Source of the DNA: Macrostomum lignano
Taxonomy: Eukaryota
Length of the DNA: 50,091 bases
Assembly (NCBI GenBank): GCA_002269645.1
Contig: NIVC01004332.1
Coordinates: 1-50,091 of the forward strand
Direction of reading: 5' to 3'
In this document: piece after piece, positions 821-36,100 of the stretch
Layout: each line of letters opens with the position of its first letter
How positions within the stretch are numbered: position 1 is the stretch's first letter
Notes under the pieces: generated by a model
What the model was told of the DNA's origin: nothing
The model's input: only the letters and a program-made list of their open reading frames with translations
Database searches by the model: none
Program-made: the position numbers and the translations under genes

Positions 821-1249
821 ATGAAGGTGCTCTGCTTCTGTCTGCTGGCTCTCCTGGCGATGCAGGTAAGCGAGCAACTCGGATATTTTCAACAAAAGGG
901 AATACTCGTACATTTGCTCTCAGAATGCCGTAAAGTGTTGATTCTGTCTCGGTCCTTAATCCAACTTACCCGGCTCAAGTCCTGATCATGTGCGGTCAGA
1001 TTACCTGATCTCTCGAGCTCTCAGTCCCTGAGCAAGTCTCTCCGCCCCGACCTCCTCTCGCAGCTCGACTCCGGCCTCGCCTGCAGCGGCGGCGACCGCT
1101 CCTGCGCCGGCACCTGCTACAGCCCGAGAACGCACCGCTGCATTGACGGCTACTTCCTGTGCCCCAGGTACCACTGGAAGTGCGGCGTGGCCTGCTACAA
1201 TCCGTGGATGTACCGCTGCGTGAGGGGCCAGCTGAAGCTTCGTGGCTAG
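821..1249 (+). CDS. Secreted 89-aa cysteine-rich peptide, CBM52 (Carb_bind)-like, copy 1; exons 821-865 and 1025-1249
   Basis: ATG 821; donor CAG|GTAAGC at 865/866; acceptor TCTCAG| at 1024/1025; TAG 1247-1249. Protein: MKVLCFCLLALLAMQSLSKSLRPDLLSQLDSGLACSGGDRSCAGTCYSPRTHRCIDGYFLCPRYHWKCGVACYNPWMYRCVRGQLKLRG. It has a signal peptide and 8 mature Cys. This spliced frame is absent from the ORF track. Confidence 0.88.
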
Positions 1250-1405
1250 CTGTGATGGCAAGGATGACCGCTGCGAGCTGCGCCTGCTGGTAGTGGCCAC
1301 GGATGTCCGACTGAATGACCGTCCACTGCTTGACTCTGATTGGCGCTGTTTCATGAGATTTTATCAGTTCCATAATTGTATCTGAGAAATCAATATCAGC
1401 TGATT

Positions 1406-1411
1406 AATAAA
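1406..1411 (+). terminator. Candidate polyadenylation signal AATAAA of peptide gene copy 1
   Basis: AATAAA about 157 nt after the stop codon. Confidence 0.5.
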
Positions 1412-1829
1412 AGTTGAGCTGCAAATTACAAAGCGAATTGTTTGCATGAGCTGCATACGTGTTAAATCGGTTTTTTATATCTCAGTGGCACTCGATATGA
1501 GTTTTTAGCAATGCGCGCATCAATGCTGGAATAGCTGTATAACATTGAGCCATTGGAAACTGCAGTTCACGCAGTGTCTGTTCAAGCAATAGCACTAGTT
1601 CCATTGCACATGAAACTGCCATGTTAAGCCATGTACTTGTACAAGTATATAACTGTTTACTTTCTAATCCAGCTTATTAGAAAAAATACTGTAGTTTATG
1701 AATAGTAATTTATGGTAGTGGGCAAGCCTCAACTGCTGGACATCCTCAGCTAGGTGAAGGTGCCGACGGCGTCGGGGTGATTACGGAATGCTGGAGAGAA
1801 TAGCTGAGAATGTCGAGAAATTCGCATCA

Positions 1830-2025
1830 GGGTTTCAAGAGTCACCTGGTGCCACCTGCTAAGGTCCAGAAGCTACGCCTGGGTAAAGGCCAGTGACCAA
1901 CGAAGTTAGAGCTGATGCAGACACGTGTGATCGACGTGCTGGTGAGATCTGGACGCCTGGAAAGGCTGCACTGAAGCGCAGTGCTGATTGGCGCAAAGGG
2001 GTGTACTGGATACATTGGCGCTATA
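1830..2025. repeat. Dispersed repeat (probable TE relic), second copy at 25750-25900
   Basis: Shared blocks aaggtccagaagct.cgcct, tcgacgtgctg.tga and aaggctgcactga.gcgcagtgctgat.ggcgca...gggtgtactg.atac occur at both sites. Confidence 0.7.
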
Positions 2026-2287
2026 CAGAATCGCCATGAAAGAATCGAATTGCTGAGAGGTCAGGCCTCATGAGTAGAATATTTGAAGATCTTTGGCTCA
2101 TAGGGGTCGGTGAGATGCCAAGGGTCAATATTGGGAGTTGTTGGTAGTCGAAGCATTGAAGGGCCGCCTCCTACTTGCACTTTATGCTATTTAGTCTCGT
2201 GTCGCGGCCGCTGAGTTGGCGGATTTTGGCAAAATATTTCTCGCCAGCCTGATTTGCCAAGCACTGCACTCAAAAGGGACTCCGCAC

Positions 2288-2375
2288 TGTGCAGCAAGAC
2301 CGTGCAGGCCCTCAAAGATGCCTTACGCGCGAGAAGGCCCTACCGACAAGTGGCAATAAAGAGGAGCTAGCTGAC
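2288..2375 (+). pseudogene. Frameshifted SAP-domain coding fragment (likely TE-derived)
   Basis: LCSKTVQALKDALRAR, then after a frameshift LPTSGNKEELADR. This matches the SAP consensus L..L.V..LK..LR.RGL..SG.K..L..RL. Confidence 0.6.
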
Positions 2376-3973
2376 AGGCCGCCTGCTCGCTGCAAGCTCG
2401 AATGCGCCCCCAGCGAGCTTGAGGACGACGACCAGGACGAAGCTGACGCTAAACCAGAGGAGAGCCGGACATAGGAGAGAGGGGAGATTTGATTCGGCTG
2501 CTATCCCGGACTCCCTGGACGTGAGACAGAAATTGGGAGGATGAGAAACCTGTCGCGGCGGCCCTAAGCGGATGGCGTCTGCTAGACAGTCCAATACAAT
2601 ATTTTAATTCCATGCGAGACAGCTGCTCGCACTGCCGCCTGCCCTGCCGCTCGAGCCTGTGGCCGGTCCTGTCGCTGTCAGCTGCCACTTTGACATCAGT
2701 CTGCTCGGCGACTTGGACGCAGAGTTTCTGAGCTCGGGCATTCGCGATAGTCGGCAAACTAGACTGGTTCTGCAAAGTGGCCAAACCTGCAAAGGCCCTG
2801 CTCCGCGCGCGCATGGATATTAACATCGCCATTCATGAGCAGCATCAACGAGTACCGGTGCGTGGCGAGCTCCTAGCCCAGTTGCAGTTCTGGCAACATG
2901 CCAACCGTCCGACGTGTTCCCGACCGACGGGCTCGAGTGCTGGAAGCGGTCGAGACAGAAGCCTGCGTTAGTGCCACTGGCTTGATCCTGAGAACCTCTG
3001 ATGGCCTGCGCGAGTTCCGCCTCGTCGACTTCTGCAGCCTCGGTCTCTGGCGCGGTTCTCGATCGCAGCGAGTTGCGACAGGTGGAGCTGCTGGCGCTTT
3101 GACCTGGCAGGTCCGGTCCGTCTTGTTTTATTTCTTCTGCGCTTCGTTGATTTGATTTGGCCCGAATGTCTCTCCCTCCCGCTTTCATTTGGCGTTGGGG
3201 TTCGCTTCCCCTTTTTGGACCGGTTGTGACAGTCTGTTGTGGCACTTGCTTTTGCTCTGCCTATGTCTTTTGGCGTTTAAGTGGCTCAACAAGGTCAAAA
3301 CGTACATTTAGTTGATTCCAAAAATTATCTCTTCACTTGTTGCATCCCTAACGGGGTGGGGGGGGGGAAATTGCTCGTAAAAAGAGTTAGTCGTACTGAC
3401 AAACACCTGATATCATGGCAAAAGTGGGTGAGTGACAAGAGCACGGATTTGATCCCCAATCACCATTTTCAACTCAGCATCCAGTATACAAGTACATGTA
3501 GTACAGGTTATTACATGTTATTCGTAATTGTGGTAAGATGGAAAAGCTGTAGTCCAGTGTCCCATTTTACACACCTGCAATATGAAGTTATAGCGGTTAT
3601 CGAATTCGATGTAGTCTAATAATAACCGAATGGTCATCCTTGCCTTACTGACAGAATTTGGATTATGTAGCATTAATCTCCATTAATCTCTTGCAGCTAC
3701 ACGCATCTGTATAATCGCTAATGATCAGCGGCAAACCGTTGTCCCCAAAACACCCAGGTGCAGAGTGCGCAGGGCGATTCCTGCGATAGCAAACTCAGTA
3801 TACAGTTTGAACAATTTGTATTTGTAATTTGAGCTCAATGTAATAATTCGGCCAATATATATTTCTGCATGAAAGAGCGCCAATCAGAGTCAAGCAGTGG
3901 ACGGTCATTCAGTCGGACATCCGTGACCAATACCAGCAGGCTCAGCGCGCAGAGGTCATCCTTGCCATCACAG

Positions 3974-4400
3974 CTAGCCGCGAAGCTTCAGCTGGCCCCT
4001 CACGCAGCGGTACATCCACGGATTGTAGCAGGCCACGCCGCACTTCCAGTGGTACCTGGGGCACAGGAAGTAGCCGTCAATGCAGCGGTGCGTTCTCGGG
4101 CTGTAGCAGGTGCCGGCGCAGGAGCGGTCGCTGCCGCTGCAGGCGAGGCCGGAGTCGAGCTGCGAGAGGAGGTCGGGGCGGAGAGACTTGCTCAGGGACT
4201 GAGAGCTCGAGAGATCAGGTAATCTGACCGCATGATCAGGACTTGAGCCGGGTAAGTTGGATTAAGGACCGAGACAGAATCAACACTTTACGGCATTCTG
4301 AGAGCAAATGTACGAGTATTCCCTTTTGTTGAAAATATCCGAGTTGCTCGCTTACCTGCATCGCCAGGAGAGCCAGCAGACAGAAGCAGAGCACCTTCAT
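3974..4400 (-). CDS. Secreted 89-aa CBM52-like peptide, copy 2 (inverted); exons 4400-4356 and 4198-3974
   Basis: Reverse complement of copy 1 with intact GT-AG sites. Only 2 CDS differences: G38S (GGC/AGC) and a synonymous CGT/CGC. Intron is 157 nt versus 159 nt in copy 1. Confidence 0.88.
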
Positions 4401-4507
4401 GTTGAGCAGACGATTGGATGTGGCTGAGTTGCAAGCAGAGAGAGTAAAACTTGTAGCAGGAGAGTTGAGAGTTGAGCTTGATTTCTCTGCGACTTGAGCA
4501 GCTCGCA

Positions 4508-4552
4508 TTTATAGGGTCTGCCACTCACCTGCCCTCTGCCTTTCACCTGCCT
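4508..4552 (-). promoter_or_regulatory. TATA box and two retained CAGGTG E-boxes of peptide gene copy 2
   Basis: TTTATA at 4508-4513 on the + strand; CACCTGCC twice in 4526-4551. Similarity to the copy 1 promoter stops at about 4560. Confidence 0.6.
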
Positions 4553-4640
4553 GCTGCCTCCCTACAATTGTGCAATCAACAAAACAACACCGGAAAAGCC
4601 TACTGGCTTACAGCATTGCTCATGAAATCTTTGAAAAAAT

Positions 4641-5977: not shown

Positions 5978-6290
5978 GGGGTTGTAGCCTAGTGGTTAGG
6001 GCGTCGGACTCACGACTTGAAGGTCGGGGGTTCGATTCCCGATCCCTCTGCAACAATTTGTGTCCTTGAGCAAGACACTTAACTCTGCGTTGCTTCAGTT
6101 TACCCAGCTGTAAAATGGGTACTAGCATTAGCTGGGGTAATTGAGGGTGTGTGTGGCGACCCCCCAGTCCTTGGACAGTTGGACTGAACAGCCGTACGCA
6201 GCCTTCAGATGCGCCGTGCAATAGCTGCGGCTGAGCTGTCGGTTGCACATCTGCCCATTGGGCAGGTGTAATCAATTATTATTATTATTA
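5978..6290 (+). mobile_element. tRNA-derived CORE-SINE, full length
   Basis: A box TAGCCTAGTGG and B box GGTTCGATTCC; central TGTGTCCTTGAGCAAGACACTTAAC...CAGTTTACCCAGCTGTAAAATGGG resembles the MIR CORE domain; (ATT)n tail. A second copy lies at 26049-26362 (-). Confidence 0.88.
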
Positions 6291-9320: not shown

Positions 9321-12300
9321 ATGACTAGTCTACATGCCGATTTCGATAGCGACTATTATTCGACAGAGCAGGATTTGTCTTCTTTTTCTTCGGTTTTAAG
9401 TCCTACTACTATTCGAATAAGTAATAATCAGGCTAATTCTTGTCCGAATTGCAATTGCAATGGTCAGTGTCGTAGGCTTGCTGCTGCTGCTGCTGAACAG
9501 GGACCAAGTCAAACTGGTGCCAACATCGATTTGCAGCACGCTGTTGAGGTCAGAATGTTGAATAATCGTGTCAGCTTGGGTCATAGGCGGCCTAAGTCAC
9601 GGTTTCATGATCAGTTTGAGCTCATTTTTTGTTGTTGCCAGATTGAGTCATAGACAGTTTCAGTTGTTGCCAGATTGAGTCATAGACCGTTTCAGTTGTT
9701 GCCAGATTGAGCCATAGACGGTTTCAGTTTTTGCCAGATTGAGCCATAGACGGTTTCAGTTGTTGCCAGATTGAGCCATAGACGGTTTCAGTTGTTGCCA
9801 GATTGAGTCATATACAGTTTCAGTTGTGGGCAGATTGAGCCATAGACGGTTTCAGTTGTTGCCAGATTGAGTCATAGACAGTTTCAGTTGTTGCCAGATT
9901 GAGCCATAGACGGTTTCAGTTGTTGCCAGATTGAGTCATATACAGTTTCAGTTGTTCGCAGATTGAGTCATAGACAGTTTCAGTTGTTGGCAGATTGAGT
10001 CATATACAGTTTCAGATGTGGCAGATTGAGTCATATACAGTTTCAGTTGTTGGCAGATTGAGTCATAGACAGTTTCAGTTGTTGTCAGATTGAGTCATAT
10101 ACAGTTTCAGATGTGGCAGATTGAGTCATAGACAGTTTCAGTTGTTGGCAGATTGAGTCATATACAGTTTCAGATGTGGGCAGATTGAACCATAGACGGT
10201 TTCAGATGTTGCCAGATTGAGCCATAGACGGTTTCAGTTGTTGCCAGATTGAGCCATAGACGGTTTCAGTTGTTGCCAGATTGAGTCATATACAGTTTCA
10301 GTTGTGGGCAGATTGAGCCATAGACGGTTTCAGTTGTGGCAGATTGAGTCATATACAGTTTCAGTTGTTGGCAGATTGAGTCATAGACAGTTTCAGTTGT
10401 TGGCAGATTGAGTCATATACAGTTTCAGATGTGGCAGATTGAGTCATAGACAGTTTCAGTTGTTGGCAGATTGAGTCATATACAGTTTCAGATGTGGGCA
10501 GATTGAACCATAGACGGTTTCAGATGTGGGCAGATTGAACCATAGACGGTTTCAGTTGTGGGCAGATTGAACCATAGACGGTTTCAGTTGTGGGCAGATT
10601 GAACCATAGACGGTTTCAGTTGTGGGCAGATTGAGCCATAGACGGTTTCAGTTGTGGGCAGATTGAGCCATAGACGGTTTCAGTTGTGGGCAGATTGAGC
10701 CATAGACGGTTTCAGTTGTGGGCAGATTGAGCCATAGACGGTTTCAGTTGTGGGCAGATTGAGTCATATACAGTTTCGGTTGTTGGCAGATTGAGTCATA
10801 GACAGTTTCAGTTGTGGCTTGTGGGCAGATTGAGCCATAGACAGTTTCAATTGCCAGATTGAGTCATAGGTTGAGTTATACGCATTATAAAAATCTTTCC
10901 CATAATTTTGATTTCAACTTTCTAAACAGAAAATGGTGAAATTGAACCAAGAGAACTTCGATCTTCGCTTGCACTGCTATCACCTGAAAGAGAAACTGGA
11001 CAGATTAGGCCAAAGTCAGAGCAGATCGGCCGAATTAGATTCTGTAAGTTTTGATTTATTAATTAATGTATTAATTTAGATTTTTTGTTTATCAATTCGA
11101 TTCACCAGTGAGAGCAGAATTTGTCAGTTTTTGAATTATGGGGCCCTGGATTTATGCCGCTGAATTTGTGTCGGAAATAGTTTATTTATGGTGCCGTTTC
11201 CTCTGTTATTATTATTATTACTATTTGATGTGTGATATTTGCGTCGGGTGATTCTATATTCGGTTTTATTACTGCGCGTGCCCAGCTAGTTTAGCCACAA
11301 CTTTTATTCCGCTTGCGATGCAAGTTATATGCTGTGGGATCAGAATATTTTGGGATCGTAATATTGGCTTGCTAATCCGTCTATCTTTTTCTCACTGTGT
11401 TCCAATCTCCCCTCCTGTCTTCCCATCTCCCCTTCTGTTTTAACATATCCTCCTGTCTTCCTGTCTTTCCATCTCCCCTTCTGTCTTCCCATCTCCCCAC
11501 CTGTCTTCCCATCTTCCCTCCTGTCTTCCCATCTCCCCTCCTGTCTTCCCATCTCCCTCCTATCTTCCCATCTCCCTTTCTGTCTTCCCATCTCCCCTCC
11601 TGTCTTCCCATCTCCCCTTCTGTTTTAACATATCCTCCTGTCTTCCTGTCTTTCCATCTCCCCTTCTGTCTTCCTATCCCATTCTGTCTTCCCATCTCCC
11701 CACCTGTCTTCCCATCTTCCCTCCTGTCTTCCCATCTCCCCTCCTGTCTTCCCATCTCCCTCCTATCTTCCCATCTCCCTTTCTGTCTTCCCATCTCCCC
11801 TCCTGTCTTCCCATATCCCCTTCTGTCTTCCCATCTCCCTTTCTGTCTTCCCGTCTCCCTTCCTGTCTTCCCATCTCCCCTCCTGTCTTTCCATATCCTC
11901 TTCTTTCTTCCCAACTCCCCTCCTGTCGACTCACCTAGCCTTCCTGTCGAGCCTCCCCATCTGCCATTCCCATCCTAATTCGAAATCCCAAACCAAGCCA
12001 AAAGTCCCAAATTCACCCGCAGAGCCAGCAGGCCTACTGGGAGGAGGAGACCGGCCGGCTGCGGCGCGAGCTTCGCGATCAGGACGGCAAGCTGCGGGAG
12101 CTAGCCGCCGAGCGGGACTCCCTGCAGTCGGATAATTCTCACCTGCGTGACCTGCTGCAGAAGGTTGGCATTGCTTTTTTGGGAACCTAGAATTCTAGGA
12201 GATTCTGGCTTCTGGGAGATCGTACACCTGAAGCTCCAATGAGTAGCTGATGAGGCCACACCTGAAGCTCCAATAAGTAGCTGATGAGGCCACACCTAAA

Positions 12301-13233: not shown

Positions 13234-16200
13234 GTGTCTGTCTGTCTGTCTGTCTGGAACTATAAAATGCGCTCAAATTCTCAATCGCCGCTCATTCCCG
13301 ATCCCCCCGTCCCACGCAGCGCGATGGCAGCTCTCAGACGTCGCCAAACCATCCGACATCGTCTGACGCGGCCACTGAGGCGGAGCTGCTGCCTCTGACC
13401 TTAGCTGACCTGGCCGGCCCGCCGCTCGCTACAGGCTTGGCGCCTGGCGGCAGCAGCGTCGCGGGCCTCGACGACTCGCCTCAGTGCAACCTCAGCGCTG
13501 CCGCCGCTGCCCGAACTCTGCGCCAGCTGATGTCCCGCGTGCTGGCCAGCCAGACAGCCCTGCGCATCGCACTGGCCGACGAGGACGCCGCTGGCAGTGA
13601 GGTCGTTGACGACGATGATGAACCAACTGTTCAACAGTTCAGCGCCGCCAACAACAATGGCACAGCCAATCTGGAGGGCGACACGGGAGAATCGAACCTC
13701 CAACGTCAGGTGGCCGACGTTCGATCGGCCGCTCGACTGCTGTGCCGACAATTGGCTGTCTTGTTTGGCGGTGAGTCTCGCCCTCTGTAGCTGGCGCCCC
13801 CTCTGTAGCTGGCGCCCCTCTCTGTAGCTGGCGCCCCTCTCTGTAGCTGGCGCCCCCTCTGTAGCTGGCGCCCCTCTCTGTAGCTGGCGCCCCTCTCTGT
13901 AGCTGGCGCCCCCTCTGTAGCTGGCGCCCCCTCTGTAGCTAGCGCCCCCCTCTGTAGCTGGCGCCCCCTCTGTAGCTAGCGCCCCCCTCTGTAGCTGGCG
14001 CCCCCTCTGTAGCTGGCGCCCCTCTCTGTAGCTGGCGCCCCCTCTGTAGCTAGCGCCCCCCTCTGTAGCTGGCGCCCCCCTCTGTAGCTGGCGCCCCCCT
14101 CTGTAGCTGGCGCCTCCCTCTGCAGCTGGCGCCCCTTCTGTAGCTGGCGCCCCTCTCTGTAGCTGGCGCCCCCTCTGTAGCTGGCGCCCCCCTCTGTAGC
14201 TGGCGCCCCCCTCTGTAGCTGGCGCCCCCTCTGTAGCTGGCGCCTCCCTCTGCAGCTGGCGCCCCTTCTGTAGCTGGCGCCCTCCTCTGTAGCTGGCGCC
14301 CCCCTCTGTAGCTGGCGCCCCCCTCTGTAGCTGGCGCCTCCCTCTGCAGCTGGCGCCCCTTCTGTAGCTGGCGCCCCTCTCTGTAGCTGGCGCCCCCTCT
14401 GTAGCTGGCGCCCCCCTCTGCAGCTGGCGCCCCTTCTGTAGCTGGCGCCCCTTTGCTTGCCTACTAAAAAAATTCACTGAAGTGAGTGTTACAAACAGTA
14501 GCTATTATTTTCCAATTATTCACCACAGAGCGATCCCCTCCATCTGACGCGTCCTCAAGCGACTCCGACAACAAGCGCAGCCATCGCAAAGTAAATTTAT
14601 TAGCCATCAATGCGTCAGTGCAGACCCTATCGTTTGAACGACTGCCGGAAGTTCAGCAACTATTAGAAGAATTGGCTAGACAAAGGTCTCGAGTTGAACA
14701 ATTCACTGACGCTGTGGAGTCTCGGGCCGATGCCCTGGCTAAGGAGCGAGTTCAACCATTAGCCAGAGAGTTGGCTAAGAGCCTGGCTAGGGAGCAGGCG
14801 GAAGTGTTGGCTGTGCAGCGAGCCGAAGCCCTGGCCCGTCAGTGGTGCGAGTCTATGGCCAAAGATCGCGCCGAGATCATCGCCAGGGGACGAGCGGAGG
14901 TTCTGGCCGAATCTATCGTGGCGGATAGGGCCGAATCTATTGCCAAGCGTAGAGCGGAAGTGCTGGCCAGGGAGAAGGCGGAAGTGATAGCTAGAGATCG
15001 GCTGGCTGTTCTAACGCGCGGTATGAATGACACTCTAGCTAGGGAGAAGGCCGAGTTTATGCAGAGAGCCGAGTCGCTTGTCAATGAAAAGGCGCAGTTA
15101 TTGGGAGCGAAATTGGCCAATAATATCGCTAAGGAGAGAGCGGAAGTGCTTGCTCAACAAAGAGCGGAAGTGCTCGCTAATGAGAAAGCGGAAGTTCTTG
15201 CTCAACAAAGAGCGGAAGTGCTCGCTAATGAGAAAGCGGAAGTTCTTGCTCAACAAAGAGCGGAAGTGCTCGCCAATGAGAAAGCGGAAGTGCTTGCTCA
15301 ACAAAGAGCGGAAGTGCTTGCCAATGAGAAAGCGGAAGTTCTTGCTCAACAAAGAGCGGAAGTGCTTGCCAATGAGAAAGCGGAAGTTCTTGCCCAACAA
15401 AGAGCGGAAGTGCTTGCCAATGAGAAAGCGGAAGTTCTTGCTCAACAAAGAGCGGAAGTGCTTGCCAATGAGAAAGCGGAAGTTCTTGCTCAACAAAGAG
15501 CGGAAGTGCTTGCCAATGAGAAAGCGAAAGTTCTTGCCCAACAAAGAGCGGAAGTGCTTGCCAATGAGAAAGCGGAAGTTCTTGCTCAACAAAGAGCGGA
15601 AGTGCTTGCCAATGAGAAAGCGGAAGTTCTTGCCCAACAAAGAGCGGAAGTGCTTGCCAATGAGAAAGCGGAAGTTCTTGCTCAACAAAGAGCGGAAGTG
15701 CTTGCCAACGAGAAAGCGGAAGTTCTTGCTCAACAAAGAGCGGAAGTGCTTACCAATGAGAAAGCGGAAGTTCTTGCTCAACAAAGAGCGGAAGTGCTCG
15801 CCAATGAACGAGTTGACTCACTCGCTCGCGACCCGATCGAGGCGCTCGCCAAAGAGATGCTGGCCTCTTTTAATCGGTCGAAATCGTCCAGCAATTCGCC
15901 TCCGCCAGTCACCGACAATCCCCAGCAGCGCTCGTCGCCGAAAGCTGGCAGTAGCAGCGATCGACATCGAGTTGAACGTCAGGCCAGACGGCTTCGCTCC
16001 GAGTTGGACACATGGCGCGGCCTGGCCGAACGGTGGAAACTGGAGGCAGCCCAGTCGGATGATGCCAGAGTGGCTGCTCAGGCCCAGCTGGACAGTCTCC
16101 GAGCTGCATCTGAGCAGCTGCGACGTCAGGCTGCTGTTGCCTCATCAGCTAGCAAGGATCCAGACGCTTCCGCCGCTGTCAAGGCTGAGAACGAGCGACT

Positions 16201-16453
16201 CAAAAGCGAGCTAGTAGCGGCTGCAGCGTAAGCAGCTACTTTCTTGTACCGTCATTAAAGTACATAGGGAACTTTGTGCATACTTATGGTTACTGATTTT
16301 TTATTTCAGTGACGCTTTAAGCAGCCGAGAAGAAGCTCACAGGCTGCACGCAAAATTAGCTGCCGTGTCTGAGCAGTGCGAAGCGTTGGAGCTGCAGCTA
16401 GAAAGGTATATTTATCTGTCTCTGTCTGTCTGTCTGTGTGTCTGTCTGTCTGA

Positions 16454-21542: not shown

Positions 21543-21914
21543 GACTTTTTCATAACGGCTCAATAATCTTGCATTTTTACTCCCTTGTTAAGCGCAAGCG
21601 GTTAATACTATAACTCAATGCTTTTTAATTATGCTGTAATTGTTTGTCAATGCAAAATAGAAACGTTTATTAAGCGCAGTACAAGTTAGGCTGGCTATGT
21701 TTTCAGTTACGTTTTTTGTTGGCCTATAGGTATGCGCATTAATGAAGTTCTGCCTAAATTTCAATGACACCTTTTCATTTTCATTAGATTGGTTTTTATT
21801 CGGGGAAAGACGCCGTTTCGTCTAAAGAGGGCGCCATTTCTTTTTAGCAGCAAGTTTTTACGACCTAAACTACTTTGTAAGTGGCGCTAGAAGTTCCAGG
21901 AAGGGGTGCAGAAG

Positions 21915-23260
21915 CTACTGATAAGGAGGCGCCAAAGCTACTGATAAAGGGAGCGGCAAAGCTATTGATAAAGGAAGCGGCAAAGCTACTGATAAAGGAA
22001 GCGGCAAAGCTACTGATAAAGGGAGCGGCAAAGCTATTGATAAAGGAAGCGGCAAAGCTACTGATAAAGGAAGCGGCAAAGCTACTGATAAAGGGAGCGG
22101 CAAAGCTACTGATAAAGGGAGCGGCAAAGCTACTGATAAAGGGAGCGGCAAAGCTATTGATAAAGGAAGCGGCAAAGCTATTGATAAAGGAAGCGGCAAA
22201 GCTATTGATAAAGGAAGCGCCAAAGCTATTGATAAAGGAAGCGGCAAAGCTACTGATAAAGGGAGCGGCAAAGCTATTGATAAAGGAAGCGGCAAAGCTA
22301 CTGATAAAGGGAGCGGCAAAGCTATTGATAAAGGAAGCGGCAAAGCTACTGATAAAGGAAGCGCCAAAGCTACTGATAAAGGGAGCGCCAAAGCTACTGA
22401 TAAAGGAAGCGGCAAAGCTACTGATAAAGGGAGCGCCAAAGCTACTGATAAATGAGCGGCAAAGCTACTGATAAAGCGGGCGCCAAAGCTACTGATAAAG
22501 GGAGCGCCTAAACTACTGATAAATGAGCGGCAAAGCTACTGATAAAGCGGGCGCCAAAGCTACTGATAAAGGGAGCGCCAAAGCTACTGATAAAGGGAGC
22601 GCCTAAACTACTGATGAATGAGCGGCAAAGCTACTGATAAAGCAAGCGCCAAAGCTACTGATAAAGGGAGCGCCAAAGCTACTGATAAAGGGAGCGCCTA
22701 AACTACTGATGAATGAGCGGCAAAGCTACTGATAAAGCGGGCGCCAAAGCTACTGATAAAGGGAGCGCCAAAGCTACTGATAAAGGGAGCGCCTAAACTA
22801 CTGATGAATGAGCGGCAAAGCTACTGATAAAGCAAGCGCCAAAGCTACTGATAAAGGGAGCGCCAAAACTACTGATAAAGGGAGCGCCTAGACTACTGAT
22901 GAATGAGCGGCAAAGCTACTGATAAAGCGGGCGCCAAAGCTACTGATAAAGGGAGCGCCAAAGCTACTGATAAAGGGAGCGCCTAAACTACTGATGAATG
23001 AGCGGCAAAGCTACTGATAAAGCGGGCGCCAAAGCTACTGATAAAGGGAGCGCCAAAGCTACTGATAAAGGGAGCGCCTAAACTACTGATAAATGAGCGC
23101 CAAAGCTACTGATAAAGCGGGCGCCAAAGCTACTGATAAAGGGAGCGCCTAAACTACTGATAAATGAGCGCCAAAGCTACTGATAAAGCGGGCGCCAAAG
23201 CTACTGATAAAGGGAGCGCCAAAGCTACTGATAAAGGGGGCGCCAAAGCTACTGAAAGAT
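21915..23260. repeat. 24-bp minisatellite (aaagctactgataaagggagcggc), intergenic, with higher-order variants after ~22440
   Basis: Direct tandem repeat; 23-bp variants break the reading frames. Confidence 0.93.
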
Positions 23261-24157: not shown

Positions 24158-27100
24158 AATAACTAACTAACTAACTTTTCCAACTAACCTGAAAAGTCGT
24201 GGACTCCTGATATTTGCCCTACTGCTAATTGCTCAAGTAAAGTTCATGATACACTCATATTTGGCACTATTAGACTGACGGTGCTGAGGCAAGCGGCTCC
24301 ATCGCTCTGGATGCTGCAGTCAGCTGCCAATGCCAGCCACTTGACCAGCTAAGAACTCTCCTGCGCGACTATTTGGTGAGAATTTTTTACACTTGCGCTA
24401 AATATGCTACTGTATGTAGCCTTCTTTAGTAGTATAATGCACAGATGAAATTCAATATTCTTTGACATTATCGTATACTTTTTTTAGTACCGAAAATATA
24501 GTAGTGACGATGCAAATAATGCTATACTGTACATTACCTGTTAGATACACCTGTTAAACAAGATTATCATCTGTTAGACACGCATGTTAGATAACCACAT
24601 CGCCTGTTAGAAACACGTGTTAGATAATACCTCGCCTGTTAGACACATGTGTTAGATTATTTCTCGCCTGTTAGAGACACTTGTTAGATTATTTCCCGCC
24701 TGTTAGACACACATGTTAGATAATACCTCGCCTGTTAGACACATGTGTTAGATTATTTCTCGCCTGTTAGACACACGTGTTAGATAATACCTCGCCTGTT
24801 AGACACACACGTTAGATAATACCTCACCTGTTAGACACATGTGTTAGATTATTTCTCGCCTGTTAGACACACTTGTTAGATTATTTCTCGCCTGTTAGAC
24901 ACACGTGTTAGATAATACCTCACCTGTTAGACACACATGTTAGATAATACCTCGCCTGTTAGACACTTGTGTTAGATTATTTCTCGCCTGTTAGACACAC
25001 GTGTTAGATAATACATGTACCTCGCCTGTTAGACACAAATGTTAGATAGTCCATCGCTTGTTAGACACACATGTTAGATAACGCCTCGCCTGTTAGACAA
25101 GCATTTTATAACCCGAACCCTCTCCCCTCCACAAGTCCGAAGAGCAGCGTCTCGAACAGGAGCTGCAGCGCCGGCAAGAAGTCCTGGCCGCCGCCGACGC
25201 CGCCACCGCCGCCAACGCCGGCCAAGACGACGAAATTGAATCGTTGCGCAGCCGGCTGCGGAAGCTCGCCGCGGACTATCAGAGCAGGGAGGAGGCCCTG
25301 CTGGCCACCTGCGACCCTGTGCAGGTGTTGGACTTCTACGAATTCAAATTGGCCGCTCTGAGCGCCGCCGGCGGCGGCGGCGGCGGAGGCGGTTTCAGTA
25401 GCGCGGCAACCTCGCGTCGACAATCCACAGCTTCAAGGACTACCACGACTTCCGCAGTTGGAATGGAAACCCGTCATCATCATCAGCAGCAGCAGCCGCC
25501 GGCTTTAGATAAGCTGCGACGTCAGATTGACAGCCTGAACCAGGCGATGTCGGTGTTCACCGAGGCCAGTCAGCAGTTCAACAGTCTGATGGCGATGGAG
25601 GCCCGGCTTTATGACAATGGCGAGAAGCAGACATCGCAGCATCAGCAGCAGCAGCAGCATCACGGATACGAGGGTAAGGAAATTGAGATGGGTGCTGATT
25701 AACTGAACCTGAAGATGAAGAATTGATCAAAGGACATCAGTGAAATACGCAACAGGGTGTCCCTAGTGCCACCCGTTGAAGGTCCAGAAGCTCCGCCTTG
25801 GTGAAGGTCGACGTGCTGATGAAATTTGGAGGCTTGGCAAGGCTGCACTGAGGCGCAGTGCTGATAGGCGCACACGGGTGTACTGAATACACTGACGCTT
25901 ATGGGAAAAATCCGACCCTCTGGCAAAATCGTTGAATATCTCGACGGTCCGGAGGGCTTGGTGACTTGATTTTTGTTTGAGAAGGTGCGCAACAAAAAGT
26001 TTTCTTGTATTCTTGAATTTCGTGTGCCTGCGTTGCTCCGTTTATATTACAATAATACTAATAATAACAATAATAATTGACGACATCCGCCCTAATGGCC
26101 AGATGTGCAACCGACAGCTCAGCCGCAGCTATTGCGCGGCGCATCTGAAGGCTGCGTACGGCTGTTCAGTCCAAGCACTGGGGGGTCGCCACACACAGCC
26201 TCAATTACCCATGCTGGCACCCATTTTACAGCTGGGTGAACTGAAGCAATGCAGAGTTCAGTGTCTTGCTCAAGGACACAGATTGTTTTCAGTGGGATCG
26301 GGAATCGAACCCCCGACCTTCAAGTCATGAGTCCGACGCTCTGACCACTAGGCTACAACCCCCAAGCAAAAGAAAGAATTTTTTCAAGAAGAAGTATATT
26401 TTATTTTATAACCTAAAGTGATTACTGACCAATCGGCTCTCTGAACTACCAGAATCCATCATCATCATCATTAATCGACATTTCATGCCGGTATGTTTGC
26501 ATAAATATCTTTTTTAAAGGGAGCGACAAGTCCAAAAAGGATTCAATATTGTTCTTTTTGAAAATCAGCGTCCGTGTTATTCGTCAGGTCTGGTGCTTGA
26601 GCCATGGACAGCTAAAGCAAAAGGACGTGCTACTCTCACAGAACTCTGACCGAATTATCGGAAAATGTGTTTTATCTGGGGTGTACTCATAAGTCTAACT
26701 AGTAAGTTCTACTATCTAAGCAAAATTTCTGTTGTTTTCTATCTCTATTTTGTGGCGAAGACCGTCCTTCTGATTTAGCTGTCCTTGATTTGACCTCTTT
26801 ACTCAGCACAGCCCCTGCAGCAGAGCAACTTCGGAGTCGCTCAGAGCTCTCTCTGACACTCCGAAGCATCTCATGAAGCCTTGAAACACGCGGTTGTGAC
26901 CGGCATTGCGGCTGACGGCTCCGATCTGCACGCTGCTGCCGAAGTTCACGCATGAGGTCAAAGCGGTGGCCGAGCCGCTGGTGGCCTGTCGAGTTTCGTT
27001 GACGAGGATCCTGATTTCCGGTGTCTGCTTGTCGTACACCGCGGCGATGTGGGTCCAACCGCTGGCCGTGTCGGTGGGTCCGGACACTCGGACCTTCGAT

Positions 27101-30100
27101 GCAACGGTGAACTCGATGTCGGTAGTTGTAGGATGAAGCCAAAACCGAGTGTGGCATGAAGAAGGCATGGTGAGGCCCTCCAGCAGAGGCATCGCACCTC
27201 TCGCTGGGTTGGTGACCTTGACCCACACTGACATGGTGAAGCTGGTGAGACACACCGAAGTCAGCTCGTCAATGTTGAACCTCTCTGACACACCCGACTG
27301 ACCAGTGAAGTTGACGGCGCTGTCCGTGTACTGCATCGGGATGTTCTCCTGCAGGTCGAGATGGCCGCTGTTCGAGACCGCATTGCGAGTCCGAGTGGCG
27401 TTGCTCATGGGCCAGAAGGCGACGAGGCCGAGCTGGCGCAGGGCGCTCCACGCCTGGCAGTCGGTGTCGTTCGTCAGACTGGCGGTCTGGAGGCTGTCGG
27501 ACATGTTGCAGACGCCTGCGCGGTGGCTCCAGGTGATGCAGGGACGACGGAGCTGAGAGCACAGGAAGGCGCACATGCGGGCGCTCGAGGCCGTCAGCGA
27601 GTGCTGCGGAGTCTGCGGCACCACGCAGCCGCCGAGCGAGATGCTACTGTGCAGCTCGGCGTTCGCACCGAGGCAGAAAAGCAGGCCGAGAAGCAGCGGC
27701 AGAAGCAGAAGCATTGTTGCTTTGGAATTTCGACACGATCTACAGAAGTGAGGATGGAAAGGCAGATTGCATGCTATATTTAACTAGTCTTGATTTGTCA
27801 ATAGAATCATACACCATTGCCTGGCTTGTTTGCTCTGTTTTCCCAATATTTGACGGTGCGAAAGAAGATAATGGAACGCGGATCGATCGTATGTTGCATT
27901 CGTATTGACATACTACTCGTAAATATGCGAGAAATTTGACTTGTCAATTTTACGCGCTGCTTTGCAACCAAAACTTATTTGTTGAGTGCTTCGGCAGTTC
28001 TACTGCTAGTAGTGTGATTAGTAGTACCTAGTATTTAGTAGTAGCTTGTCTATGGTCAGTTCTCCCAACTTGTCTATGGTCAATACTCCCAACTTGTCTA
28101 TGGTCAATACTCCCAACTTGTCTATGGTCAATACTCCCAACTTGTCTATGGTCAATACTCCCAACTTGTCTATGGTCAATACTCCCAACTTGTCTATGGT
28201 CAATACTCCCAACTTGTCTATGGTCAATACTCCCAACTTGTCTATGTTCAATACTCCTTTTTTGTTTATGATCCTGCGAAAAAATCTTTTTCTTCGATAA
28301 AATTCTCCAACGCAGCACCACAGGCCATAAAATTTCTACGAGTATGTTCAAAGACTGCAGCGGATCGTTAGGGAAAAAGTTTGAAATGCTTTTCAGCCTC
28401 AGCTGCATCCCATGCTCAGAGCATGACTGATTGACACGAATTCCACTATCTATTGTGTATACATGTAGCTGCTAGCGTGTTGAAACGAGTGCTGGATTTC
28501 TAACCAACCTCTCTCATAAAAAAGCTAGGGCTTAGCTCTATTTGCAGACTTTTGCAGCAATTTATACGTACCTCCCAGAACCATTCTTTCCCTCCCTTAT
28601 CTCAACAGCCTGGCAACCTCGCCCCCCCCCCCCAACTGCATTAAGCCGTATTCAGGTGTACTAGACTGCGATCGATAATAAATAAGAAATTCTCGCCATC
28701 TGTCGATACAAGGCTTTGCGCGCACACACAAAATGCTACCAACCTAGCTTTAATCCCGTTTCCAATTGAGTTAGTGCACTAATTCAGGGTTAATAATGGG
28801 TGGGCTCTCTTTTTATTCAGCAGGAAATTAACCACTGCCTCTCTCATCCCCTTTTTCTTTTTTAAATATATTTCCTTTTCTTATTAAATTGGTTTTTAAG
28901 CCATCGTCTGTGAAGCTTCTTTGTTAATTGACCGACCGGCATTCAGACTTATCCTGGACGGCTGTCAGTGCGATGGGTTCACGGGCAGGGAAATCATTTC
29001 GTCTGTGGCTGCTGCCTGCCTCACTCCCAACTGGCTCCTCACCTCTCACCCTCCTTCACCCCACTCCCATCTCCCTTCTCAAATCTTCACTCTCCCTTCT
29101 CCCCTCCCCCTCTCACCTCTCTCCTCTCCCTTCCTTCTCCCCGTTCTTTTCTCTCTTGTCCCCCCACACTTCTCCCATCTCCCCTCTCTCTTCTCCCTTC
29201 TCTCCTCTCACTTCTCTTCTCTTCCCTCTCCCTTCTCCTCTCTCCCTTCTCCCATCTCCCCTCTCCCTTCTCACCTCCCTCTTCTTCCCTCCCCCTTCTC
29301 CCCACTTCTATCTCTCTCATCTCCACCCTCTCTCCCCGTCTCCTCCAATCCATAATCAGCCATAAACCAATCCAATTACACTCGCTTCAGCAAGTCCTTG
29401 ATGTTTCGCATTGTGATGTTTCGTGATGTTTCGCATTGACTTGACTCTGCCAACACTGTGCGCTCAGTGGTTCTCAAGTATTTTAATACTCTAAAAGCAA
29501 AAACTCGTAACGCCTTTCAGGAGCGGTCAGTGAGACTTCGGCTACTGGCTATTCGAACCGGCACTCGCCAGTGATGTACAGTTCGGCTAGTAGGGCTGCT
29601 TCGGTTGCTGGGGGAAGCTCGGTGCACCATTCGCCAGGTGAGCATCTGTTACTCTTTGAAAACTTTAAACACTATAAGCTTCACCTATCAAGCAGAACCT
29701 TCACCAAAACCGGAACCTTCACCAAAATCAGAACCTTCACCTATCAAGCAGAACCTTCACCAAAACCGGAACCTTCACCAAAATCAGAACCTTCACCTAT
29801 CAAGCAGAACCTTCACCAAAACCGGAACCTTCACCAAAATCAGAACCTTCACCAAAACCAGAACCTTCACCAAAACCAGAACCTTCACCAAAATCAGAAC
29901 CTTCACCAAAACCGGAACCTACACCAAAACCAGAACCTTCACCAAAACCAGAACCTTCACCAAAACCAGAACCTTCACCAAAACCAGAACCTTCACCAAA
30001 ACCAGAACCTTCACCAAAATCAGAAGATCTGCAGTCAGACCTTTTAAGTGAAGCATTGCCTTTATCTGTCTATCTGTGCGCCAGAGTAACCAACTCTGGC

Positions 30101-33100
30101 GCACAGATTGGCTAAAAAAGAGAGATAGGGGAAGAGAGCAATAGCAGCGCCAAGTCCGAGCGAGGAACACTACTTCTGCTCATCTAGTCCAGAGTGCAGT
30201 GGTGAGTCCTGCCTCCCTGATGAAGATGGCACTCTCTAGCGGTGCGTGTCCTGTCCAATCCTGTGGAGGGTAGAGCTGTCGGAGGGTAGGGATAGGGAGC
30301 TGGGGCTGATAGGTAGGAAGAGGGGATGCCGTGAGGACTGAAGGGAAGAGAAGTGTCCATCCCGTTCCTCCCTGAGTTCACAGCTCGCACGATTCTCTCA
30401 ACCCAAAATTCATCAGCCGATCCAAGTCAGAATTCAAAAACAAAAAGCAGGTCAATGCCGACTAAATTACTGCTACTAGAACAAGATTCTCTCGAGAACA
30501 AACATGGAATCAGAAGAGAACAGCAGCAGTAGTATCATTATTGACGTGAATTCGTCAGACAGCAGCCAGCTGTCCCGACTGCACGTGTACATCGGGGGCG
30601 AACGGTTCAATGGTGACGTCACCTCAGACACCGACTCCGCTCTCGCAGGTTGTCAGGCCGCATCGTCGCAAACCAACTTCACAAAGCGGCAGCAGCATCA
30701 GCAGCTTCAGCAATACTCTACGAGTCTGCAGGCGGATGCTGGACAGTCTCAGCATCATCAGCATCGAGTTTGCGAGCTCACTATCGCCGGACTCAAGGCC
30801 GCCCTGGCCGACGCCGAGCACGCAGTCGGGCGTCGGTCAGCAGCTCGCACAGAGGAGATCCGCCAGCTGACGTTCGAGCTGCGCGGGGTGCAAGCCAGAC
30901 TGGCGGCGAGTCAGGCTGATGAAGCTCGGATGCGGGAGGAGAGAAGGAAGCTGAGCGTGAGGCTGGGCTCATGGGGACAATCTAATACTATGTTGAGAGG
31001 CTGTGGTGTTCGTTGCTAAGGGGATTCGCTTTTGGGACTCAGTTGGGATTCATTTGGGATTCATATGGGATTCAGTTGGGATTCAGTTGGGATTCATTTG
31101 GGATGCAGTTGGGATTCATTTGGGACTCAGTTGGGATTCATTTGGGATGCAGTTGGGATTCATTTGGGACTCAGTTGGGACCCATTTAAGATTCAGTTGG
31201 GATTCAGTTGGGATTCATTTGGGATTCATTTGGGATTCAGTTGATAAAAATTTTGGATTCATTTGGGATCCATTTGGTAATCAGTTGGGATTCAATTTGA
31301 GATTATTTTGGGATTATTTTGGGATTCAGTTGGGATTCCTTTGGGAATTTTTTAGCACTGTACTCTAACAATGTACTTTAACCAACGTACTTGAAACAGT
31401 GTAGCTTAAACAATGTACTGTATGTAACAATTTAATATTAAAATCTACTTTAAAATGTACTTAATATTTAATATTTAATATTTTTACACTTATAATTTTA
31501 TTTTTTACTGTACTTGAAAAGTGCTTCAAACTCTGAGCTATTACCAATCAAAAGAATCAATTCCGGATGGGTCCTCACAAAAAGAACGCGCACGCAAAAA
31601 ACTCCCCCCGTCCCTCAGGAGGCCAACGAGCGCCTCGTTGACGAATCCTCCGAGCTCCGCCGCCAGCTGGACCGGGCTCGCGCCGAGGCCGCCGAGGCTG
31701 CCGACGCCGGACGCGAACTCCGTACCTCGCTAACCGACTTACAATCTGACAAAGCCGAACTGCTGGCTGGGCTCGAGGCCGTCTGCTCCGAGAAAAACCG
31801 TCTGCATGAGCGATTGAGCTGCCTGGAGGCTGAGCGAGCTCGACTCGCTGAGGTGTCGGCGGAGGCCTCGGCAGAGCTGTCGGCGCAGCGTCAGGAACGC
31901 GTGGAGCTGCGGCAGCGGCTGCAACAGGCGGAGTCGGCGGCTGCGTCCGTTGAAGCGTCCAAGGCTCGATGCGTTGAGCTGACTGAGCAGCTGCGGATGA
32001 CGGAGCGAAGGGCGGAGAGTCTGATGGAGGCCCGGGACGCCGCTCAGGTTGGTTCCTTTGACCTTCTTTGACCTCTCTTGTTTTGATTTGAGGGTTTCAC
32101 GGAAAGACGTTCCGAGTGACGCATAAGTTGTCCTTGGATTCATAATCTACTTGTCCATTGTCTCTTAATTTTTTTTAAAGAAGAAAAACAATTTTTAGTA
32201 CTTTGTTTTCTTAGAAACTATTTTTTTCATTGTGGCCTTTTAATTTGTCAAAGCCTAATTTTTATTCAATTATTTTCTTATTTAACGGTTATTTTATTTT
32301 GTATTATCGAGGCCACGATGTATTTGCATCATAATTTCTTAGAAAGACGGACATTATGTACGATATAATGTTCAGGAAAATCAATCATTTCATCTTTTAT
32401 AACTTCCTAAAAATTCAGTCATTTTATAGGACATAATTTCCTAGAAAATCAGAGATTTAAACGATTTAATTTCTTAGAAAACCAATCAATTTCATTCATG
32501 TTTTGTTATTAATATTTAATTTAATTTATTCTTGTTTCTAAGAAATCAGGTCATTTTCTTTTTTCTTAGAAAAGTATACTTCTACGAATTCAATTTGTAC
32601 AAAAAATAATAAGCATCCCAAACCAATCCGCAGGAATCCCTAGAAAAGTGCCGATCATACCAATCACAACGCGACCGCGACTACCAAGCGGCACTTGACG
32701 CAACCGCCGCCCTGGAGGAGTCGCTGTCAGTTCAGCAGGCGTCAGTAGCCCGGCTGAGCAGCCACTCGGCAGAATTGGAGCGTCAGAAACTTCAACTAGC
32801 CGACGCCTGCGTTCGTTGGAGCGATCAGCACGCCGAGACTCAGGCAGCTCTGGACACCGCCGAGTCAAGGATCCAGCAGCTCAGCGCGGAGAGAGATCAG
32901 CTTAAGTCGCGTCTGGATGACTTGACCGACGCTTGGGATGAGGTTGGGGTTGCGGCCTTTGCTTTTGCTGGTTCGGTTGGAAACGGGGGGTTAGACAGTT
33001 ATCCTGCGTAACCTGTTAGACACACCTGTGATATGTTAGACACACCTGTGATATGTTAGACACACCTGTGATATGTTAGACACACCTGTGATATGTTAGA

Positions 33101-36100
33101 CACACCTGTGATATCTTAGACACACCTGTGATATGTTAGACACACCTGTGATATGTTAGACACACCTGTGATATTTTAGACACACCTGTAACCTGTTAGA
33201 CACACCTGAAACCTGTTAGACACACCTGTAACCTGTTAGACACACCTGTGATATGTTAGACACACCTGTAGTTATCTGTTAGACACACCTGCAACCTGTT
33301 AGACGCACCTGTAGTTATCTGTTAGACACACCTGTTAGACACAGCCCCGATAAAAAATTTCAAAATTTCTTATCAACTTTATTCTTCTTTTGTAAATAAA
33401 TCATGGAAAATGTCATTATTTCTACTTTTTATCACAAATAAGTAGTATAAAAAGCAAATTAGAATTCAACAACAGAAAATCCAACAACTTGCCAGGTTCG
33501 CGGCGAAGTGGAAACCGGCTACGGGGCCCGGGCCAGGCTGCAGTCCGAGCTGCGCGAGTCGCAGGCGGAGGCGGCCACCTGGCGAGCCAGCTGCCTGCAG
33601 CTGGAGGAGGAGCGCCGCGGCCTGGAGCATCGGCGAGAAACCTTGGAAATTGAGCGAACTCGGCTGCAGACTGAACTGGCCGAACTGCGCTCGGAGCTGC
33701 AGAATCGAGAGACTGCGACTTCTAGGCTGGCCTGGGAGAAGGAGCAGGTACAGCTGGAAATTTACTGTCGGCTTTTTATAACAAACAATAAATTTTTTTC
33801 TCCCATATAGCTTATAATTTAGCTAGATACATGTATAGTAAGTTTAGAACTTTTAATATTTTCAAGATTTAGCACTTTCTTAGAAATAAAAAGTCTTGTA
33901 TAAAATTTGCTTTCTTAGAAAATTTATTCTAACAGCTTTTCTAAGAAATAAAGCATACGCTTCTAAGGAACTTCTTTTCAAGAAAGAAAATCTGGTTCAG
34001 TCATTTATTACTCTTCATTTTAACTTGCACTTATCATTTTTTAAAATTGCATTATTTGTTTTTCTTGGAAAAATTCGATAGAACTTCTTAGAAACTATAA
34101 GAATTCCATTTTTTATTTTAACCTTTGAGCAAAGCAAAGTGAGTTGTATTGACTTGAACTTTTTTACAATCGTGATTTTTAGCTCACATTTTTATTAGAA
34201 ACGATTCCCACTTTCTGAGAAATCACCCAATATTTTGAATGTCTTTCTGTCACATAAAAAATCCGGAAAAAATTAACTACTTGAAAACGGCAAAAAAATC
34301 AAACTGCTTCCCAGACCGAGCAACAACGCACCGAGCTTCTTACTGAAGTTGATCGCCTCCGATCTCAACTATCCGCTGCCGACGCTGCTTCTCGTTGTCA
34401 TGGCAACAACTGCGCCGCGGCCGTCTCAGTGCAGCAGCAGCAGCAGCAACTGGAGGCTGTGCAGCGGTCGTTTTCTGAATTGTCAGAAAAATGGGAGCGA
34501 ACTTTAGAAGAGAATTCGGTGCTACAGGGCACAGCGATTGAGTTAAGGACTAAACTCAATAGCCGAGCAATGTGAGTTGTTATTTATTGATTCATAAAAC
34601 TAAAATTTGCTTTCAAAGACTATGCGCAAAATTTCCTCTATTTGAAGCGAGTGAAATGGTGAGTTGCAAACTTAATAATTTCCTAACTATACTACTTATT
34701 TCAGTTTAAGTAGGCAAGTAACGAGTTAAAGCAACTTTTTATTCAGATCAAATACAGGTTCTAAAGTAGCTTTAGATACGTTGACTGACTACAAAGCCTA
34801 TCGAATTTGATTGTCAGTAGTAGGTTGTGTTTTCTTTGAATTTTTTTATTAAAACAAAGAGAAAAACTATTGTTTATCTTTTTCTTTTCAACGCACGCAG
34901 CCGACTGGACCAGTGCATGGCTGAGAATGCCCGTCTTCGGGACCTGCTGCGCAAAGGCCAGCAGAGCAGCTCTCGCATGGCCATCGAGTTCGGTTCCAAC
35001 ACCAGCGGATTCAGTGAAACAACAGTCTCCGAAACGTGAGCAATATGCTACTGAAGCAGCTTTTTCTTAGAGCACAATTCGTAGGAAGCTTTCTTAGAAA
35101 TCTGTTTTTCCTAGAAACCTAACCATGAAAAAGTGATTTTCTTAGAAACTTAACCACGAAAAAGTGATTTTCTTAGAAATTATCCATGAAAAAGTGATTT
35201 TCTTAGAAACTTAACCATGAAAAAAGTGATTTTCCTAAAAACTTAACCATGAAAAAAGGGATTTTCCTAAAAACTTAACCATGAAAAAGTGATTTTCTTA
35301 GAAACTTAACCAAGAAAAAGTGATTTTCTTAGAAACTTAACCATTAAAAAGTGATTTTCTTAGTAGCTTAACCATGAAAAAGTGATTTTCCTAGAAACTT
35401 AACCATGAAAATGTGATTTTCTTAGAAACTTAACTATTAAAAAGTGATTTTCTTAGAAACTTAACCATGAAAAAGTGATTTTCCTAGAAACTTAACCATG
35501 AAAAAGTGATTTTCTTAGAAACTTAACCATGAAAAAGTGATTTTCCTAGAAACTTAACCATGAAAATGTTTTTTCTTAGAAACTTGACTATAAAAAAGTG
35601 ATTTTCTTAGAAACTCAACTATGAAAACGTTATTTTCTTAGAAACCATGCAATCACGTGTATTTTATGCATAGATACCCTTTCTACACACTTTAGTATAA
35701 AAAATGCATTAAGGTTTTATAGATAGACATGCTAGTAAAAAGGTCTCCATTGAACTAGCTTACTAAGGTACCCTCACATTAATTGTTCTTTGCAGCATCC
35801 TTGAAGAGAAGAACCGCCACATCCAGAGGCTTCTGGCTCAGATCAGCCGGTTGACAAGTGTGCTGAAATCTACCAGTTCGCTTGGCGGCTCAGCCTCCGA
35901 GCTGCATCAGCAGAGCCTGTCCGACAGTCGGCCAGCCACTCCGTCTCCAAAGTTTGCAGCTTCATCGGAGGCTGTGTCGGCAGCGGCGGCTGTCACGTCG
36001 TCAGCGTCTAGCGTTGTTGGCTGGCGAGGCAGTCAGGCAGAGCATTTGAGAACTCGTGTTTTGCAGGTGAGCACCTTTCTTGATCAATATGTCAGCGTTT

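Follow-up and report, generated by a model that had tools for sequence, protein, structure and literature searches.

The stretch of DNA analysed here, 50,091 nucleotides of contig NIVC01004332.1 and hereafter called the window, contains between positions 631 and 4557 two intact copies of a small two-exon gene, which converge tail to tail and encode a secreted, cysteine-rich peptide with a single module of the carbohydrate-binding family CBM52 (Pfam PF10645, Carb_bind). The gene is real; its domain family is a known one, and what is unusual is the host, a macrostomid flatworm. The features on which this description leans are the following:

631-706, + strand: tandem array of 4.1 units of 18 bp (GCGGGCAGGTGAGAGGCA) with four E-box-like GGCAGGTG motifs, called by Tandem Repeats Finder, directly 5' of the TATA box of copy 1
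about 667-1355, + strand: left arm of an inverted duplication, comprising promoter, gene and start of the 3' untranslated region (UTR); repeat pairs I1-I3, 97-100% identical
711-716, + strand: TATAAA box of copy 1, read from the sequence, 105 nt 5' of the ATG
821-865, + strand: exon 1 of copy 1, with the ATG at 821 and 15 signal-peptide codons (MKVLCFCLLALLAMQ), which aligns to the signal peptide of PAA46576.1
866-1024, + strand: candidate intron of copy 1, 159 nt, GTAAGC...CTCTCAG, absent from the gene of PAA46576.1
1025-1249, + strand: exon 2 of copy 1, with an 18-residue linker, the CBM52 module, a KLRG tail and the TAG stop codon at 1247-1249
1079-1234, + strand: eight-cysteine CBM52 module (residues 34-85), from the PF10645 match, the AlphaFold2 model and an alignment of 88 sequences
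1406-1411, + strand: AATAAA, candidate polyadenylation signal of copy 1, read from the sequence, outside the duplicated segment and presumed to be used
3868-4557, - strand: right arm of the inverted duplication, with copy 2, from repeat pairs and blastn
3974-4198, - strand: exon 2 of copy 2, including the stop codon; its CBM52 module is intact and carries G38S when compared with copy 1
4199-4355, - strand: intron of copy 2, 157 nt
4356-4400, - strand: exon 1 of copy 2, with the ATG at 4400 and a signal peptide identical to that of copy 1
4508-4513, - strand: TATAAA box of copy 2 (TTTATA on the + strand), read from the sequence, inside repeat pair I3

The first-pass annotation of this DNA had proposed a spliced gene for an 89-residue protein, and joining 821-865 to 1025-1249 encodes exactly that protein. 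As read from the sequence, the splice sites of copy 1 follow the GT-AG consensus, with CAG/GTAAGC at the donor and CTCTCAG/TCC at the acceptor. Splicing is obligatory, because the frame of exon 2 opens only at 986 and offers no ATG ahead of the domain, while unspliced read-through from the ATG soon meets a stop codon, as in the mirrored open reading frame (ORF) at 4236-4508. Use of another in-frame acceptor, 12 nt downstream at 1037, would drop four residues of the linker. Independent support for the splice model comes from the intronless gene of PAA46576.1, a protein of Macrostomum lignano, whose signal peptide aligns to exon 1, at both the protein and the DNA level, and whose domain aligns to exon 2. 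The signal peptide and the TATA box that had been claimed together with the spliced gene are likewise both present.

Both promoters are marked by the motif GGCAGGTG, which has a CAGGTG core; the window has nine occurrences where 1.2 would be expected, and seven of the nine lie in or beside the two promoter regions, four of them clustered upstream of copy 1 (631-706) and two upstream of copy 2 (4526-4551). The 18-bp array and the motif cluster may have a regulatory role. The promoter of the M. lignano homologue lacks the 18-bp array.

When the 89-residue protein was searched with hmmscan against Pfam-A, PF10645 was matched at 33.2 bits (E 6.4e-8) against a gathering score of 25, with residues 41-85 covering the entire profile (positions 1-49 of 49). 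The assignment to CBM52, which had first been made from the family consensus, therefore holds under the HMMER check; apart from it, the only Pfam match at E<=10 was one to zf-HIT, below threshold (E 0.076). The module is composed of two half-units of 26 residues, each of the form C-x6-C-x3-C-Y-x-P-x4-C, with eight cysteines in total. The internal duplication that had been noticed in the peptide is thus real, although what it represents is the half-repeat of a single Pfam CBM52 domain. A reading of the peptide as two domains was rejected, since PF10645 matches one domain built of two half-units. Many relatives carry the half-unit in long arrays.

Across an alignment of 88 domains, C21, C28, C35 and C39 are invariant and Y40 and C47 nearly so, and all of them are kept in the window peptide, which departs from the consensus only in G42A, after the second cysteine, and in a common Y-to-H variant in the first half-unit. 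After removal of the signal peptide the product has a mass of about 8.3 kDa, a basic pI of about 9.2 and eight aromatic residues, and its eight cysteines probably form four disulfides. A propeptide released by dibasic processing was considered and rejected, there being no KR or RR ahead of the module; the 'pro-like segment' of the first-pass annotation is instead an 18-residue linker without a dibasic site, corresponding to an insertion when the M. lignano gene is taken as reference. From the 88-sequence alignment, AlphaFold2 confidently predicts a compact all-beta fold (pLDDT 92) with eight short strands in a 4+4 pattern. Protein and profile sequence searches of the PDB returned no meaningful neighbour, and with Foldseek at E<=0.001 no match was obtained either in the PDB or in BFVD. 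A marginal and non-significant BFVD match was seen to A0A6G6ABL3 of Borely moumouvirus (TM 0.53 on the query, rmsd 3.2, 24% identity, E 0.77).

The nearest relative (P0005) is the 69-residue, 72% identical M. lignano protein PAA46576.1/PAA69175.1 (BOX15_Mlig018268g1/g2; UniProt A0A267DBQ1), which UniProt names 'Endo-1,3(4)-beta-glucanase 1 carbohydrate binding domain-containing protein'. Like the window gene, it is multi-copy and encodes a signal peptide followed by one eight-cysteine CBM52 module, over which the nucleotide identity is 81%. It differs in having no intron, and two further features of the window gene are missing from it, 13 additional codons in the linker and the tail VRGQLKLRG at the C terminus; its TATAAA lies about 148 nt 5' of the ATG. 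Positions 866-1060 of the window stand against 10040-10060 of the homologue contig, an insertion of about 200 nt in the window that consists of the 159-nt intron and the 13 codons. The product of BOX15_Mlig018268g3 (PAA45991.1) diverges past the first half-unit, consistent with a frameshift. The genes of PAA46576.1 and PAA69175.1 lie on M. lignano contigs of 310 kb and 35 kb, 7-9 kb from a ribosomal protein gene (Ribosomal_L10 and RL10P_insert), and within 10 kb neither synteny nor shared repeats connect the window with these two loci, the coding sequence alone being alignable.

Over the 47 aligned codons of the domain, the comparison with the M. lignano homologue gave a non-synonymous divergence (dN) of 0.17, a synonymous divergence (dS) of 0.53 and a dN/dS of 0.31, with all eight cysteines kept; the domain is under purifying selection. 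The GC content at third codon positions (GC3) is very high both in the coding sequence of the peptide (0.91) and in a neighbouring host gene (0.79), and this host-like GC3, together with the dS and dN/dS values, points to a long and constrained residence in the lineage. The host gene in question, at 26803-27714 on the - strand, is a single-exon ORF for a secreted 303-residue protein of the Laminin_G_3 type (concanavalin-A-like; LamG), 81% identical to M. lignano A0A1I8I643. The animal context supposed by the first-pass annotation is therefore real, since the LamG neighbour and the closest homologue of the peptide both match M. lignano, and on these sequence grounds we take the gene to be integrated in a bona fide host genome and not to derive from contamination.

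The two copies reside on the arms of an inverted duplication, which blastn aligns at 96.9% identity over 704 nt with five gaps and which are separated by about 2.5 kb of unique spacer. Copy 2 is distinguished from copy 1 by one non-synonymous (G38S) and one synonymous difference, and both copies are intact. The two introns differ by 2 nt, as follows from the shift of repeat pair I1 against I2. Arms of imperfect identity around a unique spacer speak against a palindrome created by assembly. A tblastn search found no third copy within the 50-kb window, and the ORFs of the spacer and flanks gave no Pfam match.

The wider distribution of the module was established by an exhaustive phmmer search of 1.84 billion representatives (E<=1e-3), which yielded 134 relatives, 108 of them matching PF10645 themselves. 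A word-index search had given zero relatives for the 89-residue query and three proteins for the 88-sequence domain alignment, results that the exhaustive search exposes as false negatives. The M. lignano protein and the query have many five-residue words in common, yet the word-index search missed it. Named sources of the relatives comprise M. lignano and the tardigrade Hypsibius exemplaris and, outside the animals, the chytrid Chytriomyces hyalinus, Piromyces finnis, the mushroom Collybiopsis confluens, one bacterial bin and a protist from EukProt, so that Macrostomum and one tardigrade are the only named animals. Among partner modules, fasciclin (eight relatives) and CBM96 (five) recur, and GH81, GH16, ricin-B, CVNH, papain and astacin appear once each; the carbohydrate-active and lectin partners are in keeping with a family that binds glycans. 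GH81 is thus present in one of the 134, and the window protein itself has neither GH81 nor any other additional domain. Fusion to GH81, the setting in which the module was first described in Eng1, is no obligatory trait of the family, which has stand-alone members in fungi.

The nearest domains outside the flatworms (P0027, with ricin-B; P0041, with a papain domain; P0051; P0018) are all of the eight-cysteine type and come from short, unlabelled, eukaryote-like JGI or Logan contigs. On the contig of one anonymous relative (L005), the gene calls split a P-type ATPase into two neighbouring genes, a pattern compatible with an intron in a eukaryotic gene. H. exemplaris contributes OWA54156.1, a 664-residue repeat protein that reaches 40.4 bits against PF10645, and OQV15001.1, an astacin fusion; they are animal proteins with the same half-repeat as the window peptide, although they are long and multi-repeat or fused to a protease and their similarity to it per domain is low (27-29 bits). 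The fungal-type small secreted proteins P0030 and P0068 have six cysteines and an insertion of four to six residues between the half-units, against eight cysteines in the window peptide, and the window domain scores 41 bits with P0030. The description of the module as fungal-type, from which the first-pass annotation started, was accordingly too narrow, the domain being found also in the tardigrade, in chytrids and in many anonymous eukaryotic contigs. Judged from these sequence matches, the family is patchy but widespread in eukaryotes and reaches at least two animal phyla.

The modules known to recognise beta-1,3-glucan in animals are those of the betaGRP/GNBP proteins (CBM39), C-type lectins of the Dectin-1 type and modules of the factor G type. 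The invertebrate betaGRP/GNBP proteins, which combine CBM39 with a GH16-like domain, and the plant hevein-type proteins (CBM18) are secreted, non-catalytic glycan binders that act in defence, hevein itself being a module of about 40 residues with four disulfides. Both are functional analogues only, without sequence relation to the window peptide. The true family reference is the C-terminal binding module of Eng1 of Schizosaccharomyces pombe, the founder of CBM52/PF10645, which binds beta-1,3-glucan and which, with its three repeats of about 50 residues, the enzyme requires to act on insoluble substrate and to reach the septum (PMC3627985). In Eng1, the three repeats are appended to a GH81 endo-beta-1,3-glucanase, whereas the window peptide has a single repeat and no enzyme. 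For the function of a free CBM52, the best guide is the secreted Magnaporthe oryzae protein GBP (MGG_05232), which binds the fungal cell wall and beta-1,3-glucan (bioRxiv 10.1101/2025.07.03.663104). Eng1 and GBP are the only two members of the family for which glucan binding is known. GBP resembles the window peptide in architecture, the level at which the two were compared, with a signal peptide, a CBM52 module and no catalytic domain; it differs in being fungal and in acting on the producer's own wall.

The reading that we favour, with moderate confidence, is that the locus carries a tail-to-tail pair of intact paralogues for a small, secreted, basic, single-CBM52 peptide which acts as a free, non-catalytic lectin of the beta-1,3-glucan-binding type, and which is a lineage-retained member of its family and not a recent transfer. 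By analogy with GBP, the mature peptide would bind a beta-1,3-glucan-type polysaccharide without catalysis; it would be secreted from a gland or epithelium and might then coat or cross-link glucan-bearing material, the candidate targets being the walls of fungi or oomycetes, or diatom chrysolaminarin. Defence against glucan-walled microbes and the handling of diatom chrysolaminarin are both plausible roles. As to origin, the gene would most simply be a member of a patchy, pan-eukaryotic family of cysteine-rich repeats that has been retained in this lineage.

Several points weigh against the favoured reading. The PF10645 score is modest, at 8 bits over the threshold. The functional binding module of Eng1 is made of three domains, and one alone may have weak affinity or a different ligand. 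Among solved structures no CBM52 was found from which ligand-contact residues could be read. Small, cationic, disulfide-rich peptides fit an antimicrobial, matrix or reproductive secretion equally well, and the idea of chrysolaminarin as target rests on general knowledge, namely that macrostomid worms eat diatoms. In the literature searched, no paper mentions the locus tag Mlig018268.

The alternative that survives best, although we hold it to be unlikely, is that the peptide belongs to a broad animal superfamily of cysteine-rich repeats, a CBM52/galaxin-like continuum, and serves without glucan binding as a structural, adhesive, reproductive (seminal-fluid) or membrane-active antimicrobial gland secretion. 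Galaxins carry di-cysteine (CC) motifs in tandem repeats and, like the window peptide, are cysteine-rich, secreted animal repeat proteins; some relatives of the peptide match the galaxin model too. At E<=0.001, six of the 134 relatives match Galaxin_repeat (PF24748), the strongest with E 6.6e-15. A scan of 70 of the 134 uncovered two sub-threshold dual matches to Carb_bind and Galaxin_repeat, P0004 and P0015, with the strongest Galaxin_repeat match not among them. P0004 matches both models at residues 352-394 and 523-630, and in P0015 (H. exemplaris OQV15001.1, the astacin fusion) the same stretch, residues 148-245, scores a borderline 25.2 bits with Carb_bind and 24.5 bits with Galaxin_repeat. 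Such comparable scores over one stretch suggest that the two curated families are related, and sequence matches of this kind lead us to regard the CBM52 family as continuous in sequence space with the animal galaxin-like repeat family.

This alternative is also favoured by the modest fit to the Pfam CBM52 model and by the character of the peptide, which is cationic, tiny and rich in cysteines and is encoded by a TATA-driven, duplicated gene, all of them general features of genes for effectors or gland products. Against it, the window peptide gives no match to Galaxin_repeat at E<=10 (the profile is in the library, and the HMMER filters drop most matches above about 0.1) and its 89 residues contain no CC dipeptide. 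The comparison by HMMER that the first-pass annotation had proposed between CBM52 and galaxin thus comes out for CBM52, PF10645 lying above its cut-off. Nearly all consensus positions of CBM52 are moreover kept, including both C-Y-x-P motifs, and glucanases and lectin modules recur as fusion partners among members of the family.

Horizontal acquisition, which the first-pass annotation had put forward, would mean that macrostomids obtained the module from a fungus or another glucan-walled eukaryote, added a host promoter, a signal peptide and an intron, and domesticated the product as a beta-glucan sensor of the immune system or an effector against fungi. We consider this improbable, although the literature treats CBM52/PF10645 as fungal, Macrostomum and one tardigrade are the sole animals among the named relatives, the window domain is closer to fungal-type P0030 than to the tardigrade domains, and the intron falls exactly between signal peptide and module. 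The domain is not restricted to fungi, and its relatives in a tardigrade, in chytrids and in anonymous eukaryotic contigs mean that transfer is not required; present evidence leaves it unsupported. The very high, host-like GC3 and the dS show a long residence in the lineage, and the nearest non-flatworm domains have eight cysteines and are not of the fungal six-cysteine type. The tardigrade repeat sits in a typically metazoan astacin architecture, and the two relatives that match both Carb_bind and Galaxin_repeat fit an old shared repeat. Since the gene of the M. lignano homologue is intronless, the intron is a lineage-specific change and not a mark of domestication. A domain of 50 residues is in any case too short for a decisive phylogeny.

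That the locus holds no functional host gene at all, being a contaminant, a false inverted duplication created by assembly or a decaying pair of pseudogenes, is very improbable: inverted duplications are sometimes assembly artefacts, and the word-index protein search had no entry for the peptide and no exact record of the neighbouring LamG protein, but both copies are intact and differ by no more than one non-synonymous and one synonymous change, the arms are 97% and not 100% identical around 2.5 kb of unique DNA, the locus shares with the flatworm LamG gene the 50-kb window as well as a SINE-like repeat and minisatellite texture, the homologues sit inside large M. lignano contigs, and dN/dS is 0.31.

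Elsewhere in the window, a repeat of about 315 bp occurs at 5978-6290 (+ strand) and at 26062-26362 (- strand), the two copies being 88.6% identical and beginning with a head that resembles tRNA-Val(CAC); the heads score 37.4 and 34.4 bits with the Rfam tRNA model, and ARAGORN calls the first only. The repeat is probably a tRNA-derived short interspersed element (SINE). Minisatellite arrays with periods of 11-95 bp make up about 22% of the window (for example 9631-10869, 13781-14451, 21912-23255 and 40783-41422), and many of them yield long spurious ORFs on both strands. A 581-residue coiled-coil ORF at 14486-16231 (+ strand) includes an in-frame tandem repeat of 14 units of 48 bp, and its Pfam match to the trimerisation domain of phage T4 gp5 is probably an artefact of this repeat. 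Coiled coils are also encoded at 31514-32071 and 33508-33810, in ORFs that may represent exons of some larger gene.

In the searchable literature, papers on CBM52 or PF10645 deal throughout with fungi or other non-animal topics, a search for IPR018909 returned nothing, and one for Macrostomum together with glucan returned nothing relevant. The occurrence of CBM52 in animals therefore appears to be undescribed there, though automated annotation records it, and the novelty of the present finding is reduced by the fact that the M. lignano homologue had already been machine-annotated with the domain.

Beyond the favoured reading, a bolder proposition may be formulated, to which we attach low confidence: fungal CBM52 and animal galaxin-like repeats could together form one ancient eukaryotic superfamily of disulfide-rich beta-hairpins, of which the macrostomid peptide would be the minimal free form, a soluble beta-1,3-glucan lectin serving pattern recognition, antifungal defence or the use of dietary chrysolaminarin, or, in a variant of the same idea, a horizontally acquired one. 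If this were true, a class of glucan-recognition module new to animal immunity or digestion would be at hand. Were the favoured reading correct, the free CBM52 lectin of the flatworm and the repeat proteins of the tardigrade would add a module class to animal glucan recognition, and the module, at about 6.5 kDa, would offer a very small and easily synthesised glucan probe. Finally, the overlap between the two models hints that families hitherto labelled 'fungal carbohydrate-binding' and 'coral biomineralisation' may be related, which could redirect functional thinking on galaxins.

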